Positions 20,106-28,357 are shown, counted from the stretch's first letter. The stretch: DNA of 34,059 bases from Pelomyxa schiedti (GCA_020536535.1 JAHLWZ010000980.1:1-34059); one strand, 5' to 3'. Notes: a model not told the origin generated them from the sequence alone. Made by a program: numbers and translations.

Positions 20106-23100
20106 ATGTCAACACAGAGTAGCATCGTCGCGTCGCCGTGCGCAACCACAGCCGCCGCCGCACCAGCAGCCGTCTTTGATGTGGCTGCTCAGCCCGTCGA
20201 CATGGAGTGCCCGGTGTGCTGGTGCCTCCTGGACCAACCCGTCACCTTCGTGTCCCCTAGTGCAACCACCCCCGCTACAACCACAACCACCAGCACCAGC
20301 AGCAGCGAGGTCGGTGACTGCGGGGAGGGGGGAACAGTGGGATCATCATCATCATCGCCATCGTCGACATGCGGGCACAGCGTGTGTCGGAGGGATGCGG
20401 AGCGGCTGTGGGCATCGGCGAGGGCGTGGGCCCGCGCCCCTGTGGGTGCTGTGCGTGATGTCCCGCCCCTGGACGAGGTAACTCACACTCCATGCAACAA
20501 GGCGATGTAATTAATAACCAGGGACAAATCGGCCAGAGTGCTGCTGCTTTAAAACCCGGTGGTAACGTGATATATGTGAAGTGCCCTGCTTGCGGTATTG
20601 CGAATCAAGTGTGCAATGGTGGGGATGAAACCGAAATCACGCTTCCCTTCAAGGTTCACTCCTGCACTCCCATAACTTCGGTGATCTGATTCCAACGCAG
20701 GTAAATGAGCCCCTGTTGAAGCCCATCAGTGTTCTTCGTGATCAGGCTCTTACTCCGGCCGAATGCCATGCATGCAAAGACAAGGCCACGTGGCGATGCA
20801 ATTGCGCAGCTCACACCAATCAACAAAATGCATGGTTTGTCTGTGATGACTGCATTGTATCCTCCAAGAAGATACATATGAAGGTGCTCAATATGAAAGC
20901 TGAACTGGGGAAACTTTGTGAGGAGGCCTGTGTTGATTCTGAGTGCCCAAAATCTGAGGCCGGCTGCACAGCGATTTTCCCATCTGGTGAACAGGTTCCA
21001 ACATCCTCTCCCTCGTCCGTACATACTATGCTGCTGATGAGGGACAACAATATGTGCTTGGTTCACAGTGAGCCTTTAAAGTGGTATTGTGTTGATTGTC
21101 AGGAATCAGTCTGCTGTTCATGCTTGTGTTATGGTATTTTTGTTCTCTTCCCGTTTTTGGTTCGTACTCAAGACATCCAGGACCTCACAAAAGCTCACCA
21201 AGTGGGCAGCAGCACAAGAACGTGCCAGTTGAAGATTCGGCACATGAGAAAGTGAAAGAGCTGCAGTCTCTTTCAGAGAGATTGGAATCACAAGTCCTTC
21301 TTTCCAAGTCAACAATCGATGTAGTCCAGAAATCTGAAGTTATCCTCTATACGGTACGAGTATCTATATTTCTGTATTACTAAATCCACTCATAGAGTGC
21401 GAAGCAAGCTATCTCAGAAATCGCTGGCACCCGAGAGAAGGCCATTTATCTTATCAATCAACACTCTGAATATCTCATAAATAAGGTCACGGAGGCTTCT
21501 CTCTCAAAGGGTTGGCATCATTCTTCATTTTAGTATCTAAATATTTTTGTAAAAAGGTAGTCAACTTGAGAAGCAGAAAACATTACTGGGGTGTCACCTT
21601 CAAGCCCTCGAGGAGGAGCAAAAAAATCTAGGGAGGATTCTCAAATCATCAGATAACCTCAAGGTCCTGAGACTCTTTCAAAGGTTGAGGTCAACGGCGC
21701 TTGACCTGCTAAGTTCACCAATTGTTGTTGCGGAGCCCTGCCTGGTTCCCGCGGTTGAATTTGTGCCAAATCTCCCTGAGCAGTTCTTCATCCTGTGCAA
21801 TAACTTTGGTTACATCCTTCCTGGTTTGCCTTGTTCTATTTGATGTTATTGATTAACTACCGCTAGTGGTACCGACTGATTTCCACTGGAAGCTTGGTAA
21901 TTCCAGTGAGGACAATGTGGCTGAAATAAACTCCAGACTCATAAAGCTCCCTATCTCTGTGTCATTGTTGAAGAACCCAAAGTGCACTCCAGACCTGGGA
22001 GTTTCTGGGAAACCCGCGCCGACTGCCGAATTACCCAGAGGAACTATCGCAACAAGCAAACCGTTCACCAAGCAAGAAGAGGAGACATCCACACCAATGA
22101 CAGTCGAAGTATGGGAGGAACATCTAAGAGGAACAAGAGTTCTCGCAACATCACAATATCCAGAAAACTGCCATGACTTATGTGAGGTTTCCTGCTGTTT
22201 GGACGACTGCAAGGGAAATGTCGACACGGTTGCAAAGAGGTGGAATTTGGAGCTTACTCCCAAGAAAGTAGGAGATTTCTGGATGAACATTCTGTATGGA
22301 AACAAACCAGTCAACAGTAAACCAATTAGACTTTCAATTTCTGAAGGTATCTTTCCTCCTGCATTACGTAAAAACCAACACAAAAAGTCCCTCCCCCACC
22401 CCGCAACCTTAGGATTGAAAAAGTTACACCCAAGGGATTTAGTTTTACCTGTGACATTCAGCAGTCATCAGCCCCGCTTTTGATCTCTGTCGAAATGGCC
22501 GGGCATACAGAAGATACCTCTGCTCCGCACTGGAAAGAAGTGCACCGCGGTGCCGGAATCACGTCTTCAATTGGTTCCGATGATGCTCAAGCCCCACTAT
22601 TGTTGTACCCAAACACCAAATACATGGTCAGGTGCTGTGTTTACGACCAACTTGGCCACAGTGACTGGGTGCTTGCTCCTTCACCTATCTGTGTTCCACT
22701 AGGTTAAGTCCCTGAACCTAATTCCATAAAAAAAAATCACTAAATCCACAAAAGCCCGGCTCACATGGGACCCTGCCTCATGCTTTCAGGTGGTTCTGAG
22801 TGACAGCAACTGCACCGCCACTTCAACTGATGCATTTACAGTGTGGACATCGCAGGAGATTACCACCGGCTCATTGGCCGTTGTCAACCTGAGGGTTATG
22901 TCCCGAAAGTCAACTTGCACTTCACCCTGTATTGGTGTGGCTGGGAAAAGCCTCACCGGCAAGGGCAAACCAACTGATTTCGTCTACAAGAGTGTAGGGT
23001 TCTGGGGATTCAACCTGGCTGTAGTTTTACCTGATAAGACCCGGCACAATGGGAAAGGGCAGCCACAAGACCCAAGGTACGGCTATGAAAACACACCCAC

Positions 23101-23269
23101 TGGGGCACTTGTTACAATGATAGTGGACATGACACAGAGCGCACAGTGCGGCACAATGAGGGTACTAGTTAATGGCTTGGACAGAGGCGTGTGTTGCACT
23201 GGCCTACCATCACCACTCAGGGTGGCCTTCACTGCTTGCTGCGGTGGCCACAGCATCAAGCTGGAGTAA
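20106..23269 (+). CDS. TRIM/RBCC-like E3 ligase: RING, two B-boxes, coiled coil, filamin-like repeat, FN3, SPRY/B30.2-like (multi-exon)
   Basis: RING: CPVC..CGHSVCRRD..CPAC, with insertions. B-box 1: CHAC..C.C..VCDDC..H. B-box 2: CLVH..YCVDCQESVCCSC..H..H. Helical exons at 21250-21800. Filamin-like end TPKKVGDFWMNILYGNKPVNSKPIRL. FN3: LYPNTKYMVRCCVYDQLGHSDW. SPRY-like: VTMIVDM..GTMRVLVNGLDRG..LPSPLR. Confidence 0.78.
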
Positions 23270-26200
23270 GTAATATAGATTATGGAGTATTTCTTTTCTC
23301 TTCCAGTGAGATTTTCTTTTCCGCGTGCTTCCAGTAGCCGGTGCCATACCTTTTCTTCACTTAGAAAATGCACGGGGCCTAAATGTGGGGCATACAAATT
23401 GTCAGCGTCAGGGAACTTCCGCCGGAATCCTGGGCCACAGTCTTTTCCGAGTGTGCATACCACTAGTCCATTGAGAATAACACTGTGATCCGGAGCCTGT
23501 TGGATGTTAGGAGACGGAATAAAAGGAATGATGGGTTAGGTACCTGTGCTCCACCATCTAAGACGAAATTGTAAAGCACGAAAGAAGCTAACCCATTAGA
23601 GTTTATTTCCACAGGATCAACCACGTCAGAGCTCCTTTCCCACTTCTTGTTGATCAGGACAGGGTGTCCTGTGGTGAGCCCAACGCCATTCAAAAATACC
23701 AGGCTAGGTGTTGATAAGTTGGTTGTTATATATGTTGCAGAAATTTAATTATATATGAAATTGAAGAAACCGGAATGGCCTTTCAATTTTCTGGGTGCGT
23801 ATCTCTTTTACGGATCTCGGTTTTAATAGTTCCGTCATGACAGAATCTCTTATTCTGATCTCAGAGACCTTCCTTTTGGTTGTTTATAGATGAGAAATAA
23901 GGAAATACTAAGGAGCTAACTTTGTTGTCAAATCAGCCATTAACACATTTGCGTCTCCAAGAAAGCATTCACAGCGGGTTGATGGCAACTACGAAAAGGT
24001 AAGAGCACACAAAGTCAGGGAGGATTCATTTCGAACCTGGAATATCGGCGGTTTGTATTTGAGAACTGTTGGTGTAGGGTTTATCCATAACAGTCGGGTA
24101 CCGGTAACTGAAAGGGTGTGAGAGAGGGTGAAAACAAAGGAAGAAACTTTTCTGCCTCAGATCCGTTATTGTCGGGCCACATTCAGGGAGAAATTTTCTC
24201 CACAAATCGTCTGTCTCACAAATAGTCCGGAAATCACGACATACCTTCAGAGATGGTTAAGGTTGCTTGATGAAAAGAAGAAATACATGGCTAATGCTGA
24301 GTAAATCTTCCATAGCCAAAAGAGAGAATATTGTGAGCCACACCGTGACAGGTAGAGCGGAAGAAGGGGCTATCATTCTTAAAAGAATGTATCCATCTCC
24401 AAGAATTCCCCCCTGTTCAGAACGCTGAACACCACAAGCTACAATTACAGACTTGGCTGTTGATATAACTGTGTGGAACTAGAAACGGAAACTAAATTTA
24501 TTATACAAAAAGTTCGGGAAGGATAACCTCGCGAGCAACAATAGGAACGGAGAGGGAAATCTGAACCCAGGTAAAGGTTCTCATATCCAACCTAGTGTCA
24601 ATAAACAATCACTATTGTACCCATTTACCTGGAGATTTCACAGTGGGGATTCTGGTTGGAGGAACCTACGAGAAGGAAACAGTTCTCTGCCTCCCAAAAG
24701 CAGCCTACATGTCCCCGCTGTGGTGTAGGCTGGGTTCCTGAGGTACTAATTTTCCTCCATTGGCATTGAATAAGTTCCAAACAAGTGGATGCTGTGGTTG
24801 TTGACAGCTTGGAGGGGGGCATGAGTGAATCTGTTGGTTCGATGGACCACAAGTCGCCCAGCTTCGAGTTCCCTTGTCCAAGTCCTCCATATACATACAC
24901 AACTCTATAACAATGGCTCAGTGAGGAATTAAAAATATTCAAAGCGTACAACCTCCCATCAGTAAAGGCATTATGATGGAACCTAGGAGGAGGAACGTTT
25001 GATGCAGTGGTCCCGAGGTTCCCCCATTCGCAGGTTTCAAGTGAAAATACTTTGGATGGAGGTAAGCCACTCGAAGTTGGGGGAAATACACACCAAGAAA
25101 TTGTGAAGATGGTCCCTCAGTGCTGCATCCACCAAATAAATAGAGGCGACCATGAAGACTGGAGGATTGCTCAGAAAATATGAGATCAGAGAAGTGGGGA
25201 AACCGTACTGCAGAAGAGATGCCCCATAGCATGCCAATGGGTAATTATCAGTAGCGTCATCTGTATGTTCAGAAAGAGTTCTCCAAGACTTCTCAGCCAT
25301 GTTAAACGCCACAAGTCGATTTGTGTGAACGCTGGAAGAGGAACCTCCAAATAAGAATGCCACAGATTTGTCATCGCTTGTGCAGGTAGCTGGGAACGAT
25401 CCGACAAATATAGACTTACTTCCAGGATCGCAGGAGGATGTGTGGTTGATGTGCCGGGGGTTTGGTGTTGAAGTTGAAGGTGCTGGGCTTTTTTCCAGTT
25501 CATTTGCTAAAGGGGGTGAACATGACTTAGTGTCACTTTCGTTTGGAATCCACTGAGCAGTTATTAAGTCCAGGGTATGGAAGGGAGACTTTCGTAGTAA
25601 TTTATCAGGTCCAACACCCCCAAAGAAAGTCAGTGTGTCGTTTTTCAGTATGCAGGAGTGACCATAACTCACGAATAAGCCTCAAAATTCAGAAATTCTA
25701 GGAGTAGTGCTTACCTGGTAAATTCAGGGGTGCCACAAAGGCCTCCAAATATCTGCCTTACATTCATGGCTGCGCCCGGGGACCCTAGCTCTCTCCCTTC
25801 ACCACCGGTCCGCGCCGAGCCCCCAGGGAAGCTCACATGCGAGGCTGTCCCTGTGGGAGGGGGTGTCCTGCTCTGAACTTGGGGTTAGGGTTAGGGAGCC
25901 TGATCCCTTACAGGTGGAAACCTTTTTCCCGAACATCCTGGTCCATATTCCCCCACTGGTGTCTGAAGGGAGTAAATGTATGTGCAATAGGGATTGTTTA
26001 CCTTTGCTATGCGTCACGGGTTGGGAGCTTTTCTGTTCTTCCAAAATGTCACACACGAGGTTGAGCAATTGTTGGGTGCCATGCCCTTAATTCATTTGGT
26101 TGGCTTAGTTCCAGAAAGTTGAATCTCCCAAAAAAATACCAGTGGCAGAACTGACCTGAATTGCTGCATGTAGTCCCATTTTGGAGCATGCCTATAGGGA

Positions 26201-26872
26201 TTATTTGGGCAAAATGGAGGAATGGTACTTCTTTCACTTCCTTCTGGGAAATTAACTTGAACTTAGGGGAACCTTTCCTGTCCTCTCGGATTCCAGTTAT
26301 AAGTATATCTGATTTCAGGCCAACAAGGATCATGGGAGTGCCTTCACGGGGCAATACCATGCGTGCCTCAGGATAGAACTAGTGGGGCAGCTGGTGACAT
26401 TTAAAAAAAAAATAGTTAAAACATGGTTCAAAATCTGGGAGAGAGAATCCGGGATATCCAGGGAAAAGCAGAATACAAATATGCTAGACATTTTGTAAGG
26501 AAGGTATCTGAGACGATAGCCTTCATAATCATGCGTGGTGTCTGTATCTACAAGCACATAATTAGTCCATTTATAAGTACATAATGTAATAGCCACTCAC
26601 TCAGTAGTTGGAAAATGTACTTGGCACCTAAAGTAATAAATCAGGCTCTCCAAAACCAAAATGCAAGCCAAACCATTTAGGGTGCTCCTTCCCTCAGCCA
26701 CCCTTACACCTCCTTCCTCAAATAATCTTCCCCTCCTCGTAGAAAGGAATTCCACCAACGTACGCTTTTCAACGTAATTAGAACCCCAATTCATTCAACA
26801 CCGGTCCCATAATCCACGTACCTTGCCCACACCACTTGCCCCAATAATCGCAACACACTTCATAGTCTCCAT
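23083..26872 (-). CDS. Multi-exon fusion: Rho-like (pseudo)GTPase + Kelch repeats + F-box + C-terminal Vint-type Hint domain
   Basis: GTPase: MKCVAIIGASGVGK, FVFCFSLDIPDSL, FYPEARM..TPMILVGLKSD, VSSATGHG. Kelch repeats with YGHS..FFGG, FLFGG, LYLFGG, PPPRFHH..YVYGG, RGH and AREFHT. F-box: LPVTVWLTIFSLLAMEDLLSISHVCRDFRTICETDDLW. Hint: CFLGDANVLMAD..LTTGHPV..YNFVLDGG..HSVILNGLVVCTLG. One GTPase-Kelch junction needs a GAG acceptor. The 3' end is uncertain; the first unspliced in-frame stop is at 23083. Confidence 0.72.
23446..23967 (-). other. Hint (Hedgehog/intein) domain, Vint-like, interrupted by three spliceosomal introns (23873-23920, 23704-23770, 23497-23543)
   Basis: Cys1 codon at 23965-23967 in CFLGDANV. 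Block-B TTGH. C-terminal YNFVLD..HSVILNGLVVCTLG. The three canonical GT-AG introns keep the frame open. Confidence 0.85.
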
Positions 26873-26939
26873 TCAACGGCCGTTGAATGAATTTTGATTT
26901 CTTTCTTTGCTTCCGGGAATCCCAAAGACTTTTGATGTG
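26873..26939. promoter_or_regulatory. Very short (~67 bp) head-to-head intergenic region; presumed shared promoter
   Basis: ATG at 26872(-) and probable ATG at 26940(+). Function inferred from position only. Confidence 0.35.
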
Positions 26940-28357
26940 ATGCGCCGCGCAGAGGTAGCGCTTCGCGTGTCGCTTTCATCGCACCAGGCCGCTCGTGAGC
27001 AGCTTCTGGCGCTGGCCATGTCGTCTCACCCGCGGTGCGGGGGCCGCAGCCCCGCACGGGCCTTCATGTCGCTGCCGCCGGTGGCCACGGCGCCCCTGTG
27101 GGAGTGGTGCCTGCGCGGGTCCGAGGTGGTCTTGGGCCTGTGCGCGTGGGTCCCGCGGTGCCGGCCAAACTCGGTGTGCTACTTCACGGTCGGGGTGTCG
27201 GCGGCCCTGCTGGGCGTCACAAGGGACCTGAGGCCGACTTACGTCGGTAATTTCGACGCGACTCTGGTGACTAGGTTGGTGCCCATTGNNNNNNNNNNNN
27301 NNNNNNNNNNNNNNNNNNNNNNNNNNNNNNNNNNNNNNNNNNNNNNNNNNNNNNNNNNNNNNNNNNNNNNNNNNNNNNNNNNNNNNNNAACTCGGTGTGC
27401 TACTTCACGGTCGGGGTGTCGGCGGCCCTGCTGGGCGTCACAAGGGACCTGAGGCCGACTTACGTCGGTAATTTCGACGCGACTCTGGTGACTAGGTTGG
27501 TGCCCATTGATCCTGGCCGCGTGGTAGTCACTGAGCCCAGGCTATCCCTTCTCAGGATGTTGTTGGTTGTACTTGGAAGGAAGCCGGTGGAGCTTGCCAC
27601 TGCTCCGCGTGCCCAGCAGTTCTGTGCGCATTATGGGAATGAGAGATGGTGGGTGCACTGTGACTACACTTATCTGACAATTGCCAACCTTGTGATTCGT
27701 GGTAGCAATCCCACAATTACAAAGGTCGTGTGCCGGGATGCCTTTCCTAAGACTGAGCCTCCTATGGTTTGCACCTCTATTTTCCTCAGCAACCGAACGA
27801 ATCTTGATGAAGCAGTGCTTGTTCTGTTTGACTCTTACAGAAGGAACCATTTCCTTCTTGTTATTGATCTCAAACAGACATACACCACTGGTGCCGTTAC
27901 TGTTCTGAGCCTCACAAAGTGCTTTGGGCCACCAGGCCTTTTTTCCGGTAGCCTCAGCATGATTAAATCAACTGGCCAGCGTGCTTTGTTTGTGAGAACC
28001 AGAGTTACAGAATGTGAGTCTGTTTGGGAAGCCGAAGAGTCCTCTGGCACCATGACGCCAATTTCCAGTGACATCAGTGGATTGTCGCAGCTGAGCCATT
28101 ACCTGTTTTGTATCTCCAAGAAAGATGGCTCTGCTGAGGTATGGGACTGCAACAACACTGCCGCACCACTGAGAGTCATTCCAGCCAAACCTAATTCCAG
28201 CTTGGCGGTTATGGGGATGTTCCCCAGTTTGGTGCTACGCAAATTCCAGGGCAAGACTACTATTGAAATAGAAGAAGATTCTGGTTGCCAGGTTGCCACT
28301 GTTTCACTTCCCCGTGAGTTTTCAAACTTTGATTTTACTGTTACTTCCTTCTTGTGA
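26940..28357 (+). CDS. Intronless orphan-family protein (~398 aa after removing the assembly duplication); N-terminal AREQLLAL..HPRCGGRSPAR motif, beta-rich C-terminus
   Basis: ORFs 26907-27452 and 27395-28357 join in frame once the gap plus one 121-bp copy (221 nt) is removed, giving 1197 nt = 399 codons. Confidence 0.75.
27168..27509. other. Scaffold gap (100 N, 27289-27388) flanked by an exact 121-bp duplication; unmerged contig overlap
   Basis: 27168-27288 is identical to 27389-27509, the same geometry as the gap at 6438. Confidence 0.9.

Follow-up and report, generated by a model that had tools for sequence, protein, structure and literature searches.

A Rho-like/Kelch/F-box protein of Pelomyxa schiedti with a C-terminal Vint-type Hint domain

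Results

Gene structure and transcript evidence

The window, the 34,059-nt stretch of DNA analyzed here, is one whole contig (GCA_020536535.1 JAHLWZ010000980.1:1-34059) of Pelomyxa schiedti (Archamoebae), a little-studied anaerobic amoeba whose genome and RNA data were derived from single cells. It holds a real, expressed gene for a predicted cytosolic protein of 866 amino acids, in which a Rho-like domain, a Kelch propeller, an F-box, a linker, and a Vint-type Hint domain follow one another (Table 1).

Table 1. Features of the P. schiedti gene, with positions counted from the first nucleotide of the window.
Feature	Position	Strand	Remarks
Whole coding region	23280..26872	minus	22 exons, 866 aa, introns 37–67 nt
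Exons 1–6	26822-26872, 26674-26764, 26601-26627, 26423-26547, 26229-26378, 26140-26191	minus	
Exons 7–12	26002-26085, 25922-25962, 25715-25872, 25209-25667, 25094-25158, 24953-25049	minus	
Exons 13–18	24629-24904, 24528-24591, 24287-24478, 24148-24244, 24037-24107, 23921-23988	minus	
Exons 19–22	23771-23872, 23544-23703, 23396-23496, 23280-23349	minus	
RNA-confirmed GT..AG introns	24592-24628, 24479-24527, 24245-24286, 24108-24147, 23989-24036	minus	
RNA-confirmed GT..AG introns, Hint-coding	23873-23920, 23704-23770, 23497-23543, 23350-23395	minus	
Rho-like small-GTPase domain, aa 1–190	26012..26872	minus	PDB sequence matches; paralogue alignment
Two linker exons, GTPase to Kelch, aa 194–260	25715..25962	minus	Exons per GenBank P0030
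Kelch beta-propeller, aa 247–612	24383..25755	minus	Pfam
F-box, aa 621–667	24176..24358	minus	ALPVTVWLTIFSLL...DDLWRKFLPECG; split by intron 24245-24286
F-box-to-Hint linker, 40 aa, aa 668–707	23968..24175	minus	Ends ...LPSTRCE
40-nt intron, alternatively retained	24108..24147	minus	RNA contigs
Putative scissile bond, codons Glu707/Cys708 (Cys1)	23965..23970	minus	Prediction
Hint core (Vint-type), aa 708–830	23437..23967	minus	Introns 23873-23920, 23704-23770, 23497-23543 inside
Block-B motif T767...H770 in GLTTGHP	23664..23675	minus	Relatives' alignment
Helical C-terminal tail, aa 831–866	23283..23436	minus	Split by intron 23350-23395
Stop codon	23280-23282	minus	

Logan contigs from three single-cell RNA-seq runs (X1, X2, and X3) served as transcript evidence. 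They back 13 splice junctions of the gene, namely those listed in Table 1 and a further four upstream of 24628. The X2 contig (record 6, 1331 nt) runs in frame from the Kelch exon at 25417 through the F-box to the Hint exon at 23771, so that Kelch, F-box, and Hint lie on one spliced mRNA; the initial annotation had raised the question of a single transcript. All Hint exons are covered by X1 record 1, which is fused with a convergent plus-strand gene, and by X3 record 8. The Kelch, F-box, linker, and Hint sequences that the initial annotation had spliced from exons between 24620 and 23440 are present and RNA-backed. The end of the protein was misplaced at 23083 instead of 23280, because the last intron, marked by the RNA joint 23344/23391, had been missed; the Hint coding region contains four introns by the RNA joints, and not three.

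The remaining eight upstream introns are predictions (GT..AG, 39–57 nt, open frame). Five of the eight agree with the GenBank model KAH3743561.1 (P0030; 98.8% identity over 749 aa), and for six the exon plan of the paralogue P0004 shows an equivalent. Which exon is taken to encode the P-loop decides the first two, the first of which falls where P0030 reads the DNA differently. Among the RNA contigs listed, none joined the Rho-like exons (26002–26872) to the Kelch exons. We accepted this join because the frame is open through typical introns, the GenBank model P0030 agrees, and the paralogues have the same exon plan. A separate start for a Kelch–F-box–Hint gene at an ATG near 25766 would be compatible with the RNA but is unlikely, as the fused paralogues disfavor it.

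Two other models of this region were discarded. A pseudogene had been considered on account of two apparent frameshifts in the Rho-like region (after ...SNY and after ...PNEL), where introns of 53 and 54 nt restore the frame; this reading was dropped because P0004 shares the 27- and 125-nt exons at the first site and P0030 reads across the second. A single 232-nt intron between the GTPase and Kelch parts, used in the first model, gave way to the two small exons of the GenBank model, since the motif that they encode is conserved in the paralogues. The GenBank model ends inside the Hint domain, most of which is therefore absent from the public model. Searches of Rfam gave no match over the whole window, nor over 25650–26050 at E up to 1.

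Rho-like and Kelch parts

The top PDB sequence matches of the Rho-like domain were Rho1, RhoA, TC10, and Rac1 (E about 1e-8), and Pfam Ras scored 20.6 bits on the GenBank model, slightly below the cut-off of 21.6. The protein has no signal peptide, and its N-terminus is the β1/P-loop of the G-domain. Alignment of the paralogues gave G1 GASGVGKR, G3 DTTH, G4 LKSD, and G5 SSAT; none of the canonical motifs compared (G1 GxxxxGK[ST], G3 DxxG, and G4 [NT]KxD) is present, and the paralogue P0111 has the near-canonical GKT, DPAG, and TKLD. The closest sequence relatives of the domain called Rho-like in the initial annotation are Rho proteins. A working GTPase switch is unlikely in the copy studied because G1, G3, and G4 are degenerate; the domain is probably a pseudo-GTPase. 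Within this region, RNA confirms the intron 26192–26228 only.

The two linker exons, which none of the RNA contigs listed spanned, encode a paralogue-conserved G-I-W-x-x-M-F-G-K-K motif and a Pro/Gly-rich stretch. In regards to the Kelch propeller, Pfam Kelch_KLHDC2_KLHL20_DRC7 (PF24681) scored 127.5 bits, and Kelch_1, 3, 4, and 6 each exceeded the cut-off. RNA contigs span 24629–25663 of this part and confirm four introns.

F-box, linker, and an alternatively retained intron

The F-box scored 42.8–45.9 bits with Pfam F-box-like (cut-off 24.3) and 27.9–30.6 bits with Pfam F-box (cut-off 20.5) with both the GenBank model and the translated RNA contig as queries; the RNA splice gave 44.7 bits with F-box-like. 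The order of Kelch and then F-box is opposite to that of classical F-box/Kelch receptors, which makes the geometry of SCF assembly uncertain. The linker that follows bears a conserved W-x-N-[PS]-[TSF]-P...KY motif. In the AF2 model, the pLDDT was 61–66 over the 30 residues preceding Cys1, which suggests that this stretch is flexible.

Two contigs differ at the 40-nt intron within the linker: the one from X2 (depth 10.4) has it spliced out, giving the Hint domain in frame, and L001 from X1 (depth 24.2) keeps it, with all other introns removed. Retention shifts the frame and brings in a stop 7 codons past the start of the next exon (...ADIPVAINPL*), and the resulting mRNA encodes a Kelch/F-box protein without the Hint domain. 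As one of the two RNA contigs has this intron, some of the transcripts do not code for the Hint domain.

Vint-type Hint domain

The spliced product reads ...FQLPSTRCE/CFLGDAN..., with GLTTGHP, YNFVLDGG, and DHSVILNGLVVCTLGKDCG further on, and the protein ends ...DADNL/YGTGYWKHAEKKISLEEKRNTP; the RNA-contig protein P0001 ends ...NTP. Single exons gave weak Pfam matches only (Vint E 0.0035), and the result became decisive once the spliced sequence of the RNA contig was used: Pfam Vint scored 58.3 bits (E 1e-15, cut-off 27; L001:652-1218) and, on P0001, 47.7 bits. With Pfam Hint PF01079 (cut-off 29.7), the score was 12.4 bits. A profile search against the PDB found 8r2c, the crystal structure of a Tetrahymena Vint domain, at E 3.5e-23. 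The AF2 model of the domain (pLDDT 90.2, pTM 0.80) had 8r2c as the best Foldseek match (E 8e-8, TM 0.53/0.59, rmsd 2.2, 127 columns), followed by BIL2 and then by inteins and Hedgehog HhC. These results confirm the proposed Hint fold with a Vint domain as the closest structure. The term Vint-like, used initially, understates the similarity, as the score of the domain passes the Pfam threshold for Vint itself.

Cys1 (C708) was conserved in 76 of 76 and in 68 of 68 aligned relatives and the −1 residue was variable, which matches the expectation for Hint domains. Thr767 was kept in 67 and His770 in all of the 68 relatives, a second His (H814) in 61, and a second Cys (C830), near the end of the fold, in 52. 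Cys1 and the block-B Thr and His, pointed out in the initial annotation, are therefore invariant or nearly so. The near-invariant Gly of the G-D motif (97% conserved) is Arg (R761) in the copy studied, and one family-conserved Pro is Ser.

The fold ends in ...VVCTLGKDCG, and a conserved 36-aa tail precedes the stop. The spliced sequence has no terminal His-Asn, as had been noted, and no C-extein, and no VWA or Vwaint match was found around the Hint domain at E up to 10, nor over the whole model at 0.001. Positions 118–166 of the Pfam Vint profile are unmatched; in their place stands a helical tail with the motif P..D..YG.GYW, conserved across the subfamily. The tail helices lie at model residues 155–187 (pLDDT above 90), and the 8r2c match falls short of the tail, as do most AFDB matches, which stop near model residue 150.

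Paralogues and relatives

The gene is no single oddity: at least 16 paralogues in P. schiedti, this one among them, have the same order of the four domains and the same exon plan. Their Vint domains form a single clade (support 99/98). Intron positions in the Hint domain are common to the paralogues P0004 and P0005, and since the paralogues are just 48–54% identical, the shared positions indicate that the Hint is an old resident domain and no mobile intein, in line with the long-standing domestication argued for initially.

Searches for this architecture in other organisms gave only generic Kelch proteins with at most 28% identity. In about 70 of the 76 relatives, the Hint closes the protein, with 115–195 residues from Cys1 to the end, and one of the 76 had VWA and Vwaint. 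Vint-type Hint domains of Archamoebae carry as cargoes Kelch/F-box, F-box alone, WWE, WD40, PAF, and Fic. In the literature searched, we found no paper on an F-box–Hint fusion, and the P. schiedti genome paper makes no mention of Rho-like/Kelch/F-box/Hint genes; the layout is undescribed in that literature.

Discussion

Predicted processing and its alternatives

The leading explanation, which we consider reasonably probable, is self-cleavage by the Hint domain at E707/C708 to release a Kelch/F-box adaptor for an SCF ubiquitin ligase. The domain would work a single time and in cis: Cys708, aided by Thr767 and His770, would attack the carbonyl of Glu707 (N-to-S acyl shift), and water or a thiol would resolve the thioester to give a 77-kDa Kelch/F-box adaptor and an 18-kDa Hint fragment. 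The freed adaptor could join the SCF complex via its F-box, and the precursor form together with the retained-intron mRNA could set the amount of mature adaptor. We infer that cleavage occurs, where it occurs, what becomes of the thioester, and that the protein belongs to an SCF ligase. The C-terminal position of the Hint domain in most relatives fits a module that releases its N-terminal part, and Vint proteins were predicted to undergo intracellular processing (Burglin 2008, PMC2362128). We found no report of cleavage by any Vint domain in the literature searched. This last point would favor the view that the Hint does not cleave and stays on as a binding, dimerization, or autoinhibitory module, its conserved Cys and His serving elsewhere, e.g., in metal or redox sensing. 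The Gly-to-Arg change at R761 and the motifs past A and B, which deviate from their intein and Hog counterparts (PMC2362128), point the same way. We nevertheless judge this view improbable, given that the invariant Cys is the exact first residue of the fold after a variable −1 residue, that TxxH is (nearly) invariant in 68 relatives with unrelated N-terminal parts, and that the domain is nearly always last in the protein, features that together mark a catalytic module for N-terminal cleavage.

Covalent transfer shares the first step with self-cleavage and would differ in its outcome: the Glu707 thioester would pass to a lipid or sterol, a small molecule, or a Lys or Cys of a partner, so that the adaptor would be anchored or cross-linked without enzymes. 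By analogy with the sterol-recognition region (SRR) of Hedgehog, the P..D..YG.GYW tail would recruit the nucleophile. The conserved helical tail of ~36 aa past the Hint core lies outside the 8r2c match, and C830 recalls Hedgehog C143, which bears a branched thioester (PMC12054796). Second among the structural matches comes BIL2 from the BUBL locus of Tetrahymena, and relatives of this Vint subfamily are joined to other ubiquitin-system or ADP-ribose-linked modules (F-box alone and WWE; for the classic family, U-box). Against this, the protein is cytosolic and has no recognizable adduct-binding domain, the tail is half as long as the SRR and has no similarity to it, and the sequence points to no nucleophile, the case being analogy throughout. 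Transfer is accordingly a rather unlikely outcome. A broader form is likewise doubtful: the Vint domain would turn the C-terminus of the adaptor into a thioester, which a defined nucleophile would then take over, be it a membrane lipid, a metabolite, or a residue of Skp1, of cullin, or of a substrate, and the ligase receptor would be tethered or armed through a covalent bond that needs no E1, E2, or transferase; the same chemistry would be spread over the Archamoebae cargoes (Kelch/F-box, WWE, WD40, and Fic), and the 40-nt intron would switch between self-processing and plain forms.

An artefact or decay, i.e., Hint exons from another transcript, a pseudogene locus, or a mobile intein, is very improbable. 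KAH3743561.1 ends within the Hint domain, one RNA contig keeps a frame-breaking intron, and Logan contigs can fuse adjacent transcripts, as X1 record 1 did; however, the frame of 866 codons is open over 21 introns, in the X2 contig the frame runs on from the spliced F-box exon into the Hint exons, and 16 paralogues have an identical order and exon plan. An intein is excluded by the lack of a C-extein, His-Asn, and endonuclease and by the four spliceosomal introns in the domain.

Comparison with known systems

The initial annotation regarded the gene as a candidate new system, which goes too far: the Vint domain is known and structurally solved, and VWA-Vwaint-Vint proteins (Vint, Pfam PF14623), some with an N-terminal U-box, were reported previously (Burglin 2008, PMC2362128). 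The P. schiedti protein belongs to the same Hint subfamily by Pfam, profile search, and fold (8R2C). Both are intracellular and have a C-terminal Hint with Cys1 and TxxH and without His-Asn, and some VWA-Vwaint-Vint members also carry a ubiquitin-ligase domain on the same chain. Unlike these, the P. schiedti protein has no VWA/Vwaint and a Rho-like/Kelch/F-box adaptor as its cargo; its tail is helical with YG.GYW in place of Vint profile positions 118–166; and its architecture was found in one amoeba only, as a 16-gene expansion.

Hedgehog/Hog proteins share the Hint fold, Cys1 and TxxH, the position C-terminal to a cargo that is released (in P. schiedti by prediction), a short region past the Hint core, and a second conserved Cys near the fold end. 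The P. schiedti Hint scores only 12 bits with PF01079, and Foldseek ranks HhC 37th to 41st. As the protein has neither a signal peptide nor an SRR, it is predicted to be cytosolic and not secreted. BIL domains (Tetrahymena BUBL; 6TMM and 6Y75) are the second structural match and are Hint domains that process a ubiquitin-system protein without enzymes. They flank ubiquitin-like domains, whereas the cargo here is an E3 adaptor; 6TMM has a C-terminal Asn (N143), which the P. schiedti Hint lacks; and the sequence similarity is weak (E 3e-6 vs 3.5e-23 for Vint in the profile search). Inteins share the Hint fold and blocks A and B and are numerous among the Foldseek matches, but the P. schiedti Hint has no C-extein, terminal His-Asn/+1 nucleophile, or homing endonuclease and does have spliceosomal introns.

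The nematode Hog families (warthog, groundhog, and quahog) are likewise a lineage-specific radiation of one Hint type with varied N-terminal cargoes. Theirs are secreted cysteine-rich cargoes on a Hog-type Hint, whereas in the Archamoebae family a Vint-type Hint carries intracellular signaling and ubiquitin-system domains. F-box/Kelch SCF substrate receptors include the plant FBK proteins and human FBXO42. As in these, an F-box and a Kelch propeller lie on one chain, both above the Pfam thresholds here; in the P. schiedti protein, Kelch precedes the F-box, and a GTPase-like N-terminus and a C-terminal Hint are added.

Significance

The finding is based on sequence and predicted structure in one amoeba. 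Because the public gene model lacks most of the Hint domain, fusions such as Kelch/F-box/Hint can slip past surveys of domain architecture. A crystal structure is available for the Vint family, and we found no published activity for it in the literature searched; the gene supplies a concrete cargo and a putative site, E707/C708. To our knowledge, Hint domains are the sole protein modules that self-activate a peptide bond as a thioester, and in eukaryotes we know of their use to date in the addition of cholesterol to Hedgehog, in inteins, and at the ciliate BIL/ubiquitin-like loci. A Hint domain on an SCF substrate receptor, in at least 16 copies, would add a new use, and would imply that E3 adaptors may be produced as self-cleaving or self-attaching precursors.

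Gene structure and transcripts

Pelomyxa schiedti belongs to the Archamoebae and is a free-living, anaerobic amoeba; its genome, obtained by single-cell sequencing, has a mean of 7.4 introns per gene (PMC8887013). The GenBank protein KAH3743561.1 (P0030, "hypothetical protein Pelo_15044") maps to the contig studied here, which is complete at 34,059 bp. We aligned Logan contigs from three single-cell RNA-seq runs (X1–X3) and one run of unrecorded type (X4) to positions 22300–27300. Thirteen minus-strand introns (GT..AG, 37–67 nt) were seen in the RNA contigs and were checked base by base. One RNA contig (X2 record 6) extends from 25417 in the Kelch exon across the F-box exons as far as the Hint exon at 23771, which bears out the single transcript for Kelch, F-box and Hint that the initial annotation had proposed, and all Hint exons were spliced together in X1 record 1 (L001) and X3 record 8. 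Given eight more predicted introns (39–57 nt) in the 5' third, the open frame comprises 866 codons, from 26872 to a stop at 23280–23282. These eight introns were placed from the open frame; the GenBank model agrees for five, and the exon plan is matched in two paralogues. The exon lengths are 27, 125, ..., 65, 97, 276, 64, 192, 97, 71, 68, 102, 160 and 101 in the gene studied here and 27, 125, ..., 65, 91, 237, 64, 198, 97, 71, 71, 102, 175 and 101 in the paralogue P0004, mapped on its own contig. Because none of the RNA contigs shown bridges 25663 to 26178, we infer, rather than observe, the join between the Rho-like domain and Kelch.

The RNA-based C-terminus reads ...DADNL followed by YGTGYWKHAEKKISLEEKRNTP and ends at 23280. 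The conserved YG.GYW motif of the subfamily was recovered once the last intron (23350–23395) was spliced. The initial annotation, which had missed this intron and carried the tail ORF down to 23083, had also counted three introns within the Hint, the coding region of which is interrupted by four; its sequence features were confirmed and its gene end was corrected to 23280. The public model begins at an ATG within intron 1 and is therefore missing the P-loop exon (affected region 26765–26872). Its donor near 26228 (26192–26237) is placed 9 nt upstream of the one seen in RNA. Moreover, it continues past the second Hint exon into intronic sequence (23704–23770), ending ...ERPFRFLQFHI, and therefore keeps just the first third of the Hint, so that most of the Vint is absent from the public protein.

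A 40-nt intron (24108–24147) had been spliced out of one RNA contig but was present in a second contig of that sample, which had lost every other intron. Its retention shifts the frame and stops the protein just before the Hint, giving a Kelch/F-box protein without it; this may reflect either incomplete splicing or a genuine switch. Single-base differences between RNA contigs and genome were observed at 23953 (synonymous, Asp712), 24445 (Ile to Val, last Kelch blade), 25268 and 23576. A 2-nt deletion is seen in one RNA contig at 26464, within a Rho-like exon, and the contig of X4, a run that covers 0.97 of the stretch, carries several substitutions and small deletions in the 5' UTR region (26873–26987); these two differences may be allelic, cell-to-cell or polishing differences. 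A 75-nt GC-rich stretch within the minus-strand linker exon (25776–25851) has 90–95% matches in extremely abundant RNA contigs (summed depth 2–6 × 10^5), the flanks of which differ from the window. It resembles a fragment of some highly abundant RNA, possibly rRNA or spacer; Rfam gave no match for this stretch. CCCTAA repeats lie in the adjoining intron (about 25880–25895).

A convergent plus-strand gene at 22495–23269 has a GT..AG intron (22701–22752), a 5' end marked by a template-switch adaptor at 22495, and a 248-aa product without a Pfam match. Only about 10 nt separate its stop (23269) from that of the Hint gene (23280), and each 3' UTR therefore overlaps coding exons of the other gene. 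In L001 the RNA assembler merged both convergent transcripts.

Domains of the predicted product

Domains and conserved residues of the 866-aa product
Feature	Position	Observation
Rho-like domain	aa 1–190	best solved-structure matches Rho1, RhoA, TC10, Rac1
Kelch propeller	aa 247–612	far over Pfam thresholds
F-box	aa 621–667	over Pfam threshold on GenBank model and RNA-contig translation
F-box-to-Hint linker	40 aa	paralogue-conserved W-x-N-[PS]-[TSF]-P...KY motif; C-terminal end ...STRCE
Residue preceding Cys1	E707	variable among relatives
Cys1	C708	68/68 relatives; 76/76 in full-length set
Block-B Thr	T767	67/68 relatives
Block-B His	H770	68/68 relatives
Second His	H814	61/68 relatives
Late Cys	C830	52/68 relatives

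In the paralogue alignment, the Rho-like domain of this copy reads GK-R in the P-loop, DTTH in G3 and LKSD in G4, so it is probably non-functional as a switch; near-canonical G motifs are found in the paralogue P0111. The linker between F-box and Hint is predicted by modelling to be flexible.

A Pfam search from Cys708 gave Vint at 58.3 bits (E 1e-15, cut-off 27), with the homing-endonuclease Hint and Hedgehog Hint models at 22 and 12 bits on the same domain. A profile of 68 relatives matched the Tetrahymena Vint crystal structure (8r2c) at E 3.5e-23, with PI-SceI, BIL and Sonic hedgehog far behind. The AlphaFold2 model from this alignment had a mean pLDDT of 90.2 and a pTM of 0.80; Foldseek ranked 8r2c top, followed by the Tetrahymena Hint domain BIL2 (BUBL1 locus), numerous inteins and Hedgehog HhC, and the matching AlphaFold DB clusters include ones named Vint, U-box and VWFA proteins. 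These results uphold the earlier assignment to the Hint fold. Of 76 relatives, about 70 end 115–195 residues beyond Cys1. At two conserved positions outside the catalytic set, the copy studied here differs from consensus: Gly is replaced by Arg in the G-D motif, and Pro by Ser.

Proposed processing

As first described, Cys1 and TxxH are kept and the terminal His-Asn is absent; the spliced Hint product has no C-extein candidate either. This pattern is unlike that of a splicing intein and matches that of modules which form a thioester at the preceding residue and release the N-terminal part. By established Hint-domain chemistry, Cys708, aided by Thr767 and His770, would attack the Glu707 carbonyl, and the resulting thioester would be resolved, by default through plain hydrolysis or thiolysis. 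The products, a 77.4-kDa Rho-like/Kelch/F-box fragment ending ...LPSTRCE and a 17.7-kDa Vint fragment beginning CFLGDANVLMADLTTK, would then separate.

Alternatively, the Glu707 thioester could be transferred to a specific nucleophile, which we consider unlikely. A conserved helical tail follows the Hint core, the late conserved Cys invites comparison with C143 of Hedgehog, the site of a branched thioester (PMC12054796), and the Hint is structurally near BIL2; all three features would be compatible with transfer. Self-processing of the protein is, on sequence grounds, a plausible interpretation.

U-box-VWA-Vint proteins have been reported and their intracellular processing predicted (Burglin, PMC2362128), and the occurrence of Vint alongside ubiquitin-ligase parts is thus already known. 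In the literature searched, neither an activity of Vint nor a fusion of F-box and Hint was described.

Gene family and relatives

An exhaustive phmmer search of the spliced Hint against 1.84 billion representatives gave 95 matches, the top ones being P. schiedti proteins of 700–1075 aa with the order Ras/Rho-like, Kelch, F-box and Vint. Combined with a second search, this gave at least 16 P. schiedti genes of this order including the one studied here, plus one fragmentary model; one of these genes has an added Fic domain (P0113, 1075 aa, Fic+Ras+Kelch+F-box). When 101 Vint domains were placed in a tree, those of the Rho-like/Kelch/F-box genes formed one clade (support 99/98), joined only by two truncated rows of the fragmentary gene, which suggests that a single fusion arose and was then duplicated. 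The same architecture was not found outside P. schiedti in a full-length shared-word search with the best-preserved paralogue, in which the 8000 best candidates were scored.

The classic VWA/Vwaint context occurs in only 1 of 76 relatives, and the more distant Vint proteins belong to Trimastix and Arcella or derive from metagenomes. Further Vint proteins from P. schiedti, Pelomyxa sp. JSP and Mastigella eilhardi, all Archamoebae, have a WWE, WD40 or PAF (PCNA-associated-factor) domain or an F-box alone as cargo; proteins with such varied cargoes include P0113, P0010/P0011/P0018, P0021, P0020 and P0012. The Rho-like/Kelch/F-box/Vint order is a domain architecture that is new, and the genes that share it make up a lineage-specific family based on a known Hint subfamily; a single Hint type is distributed over many intracellular cargoes in the Archamoebae.
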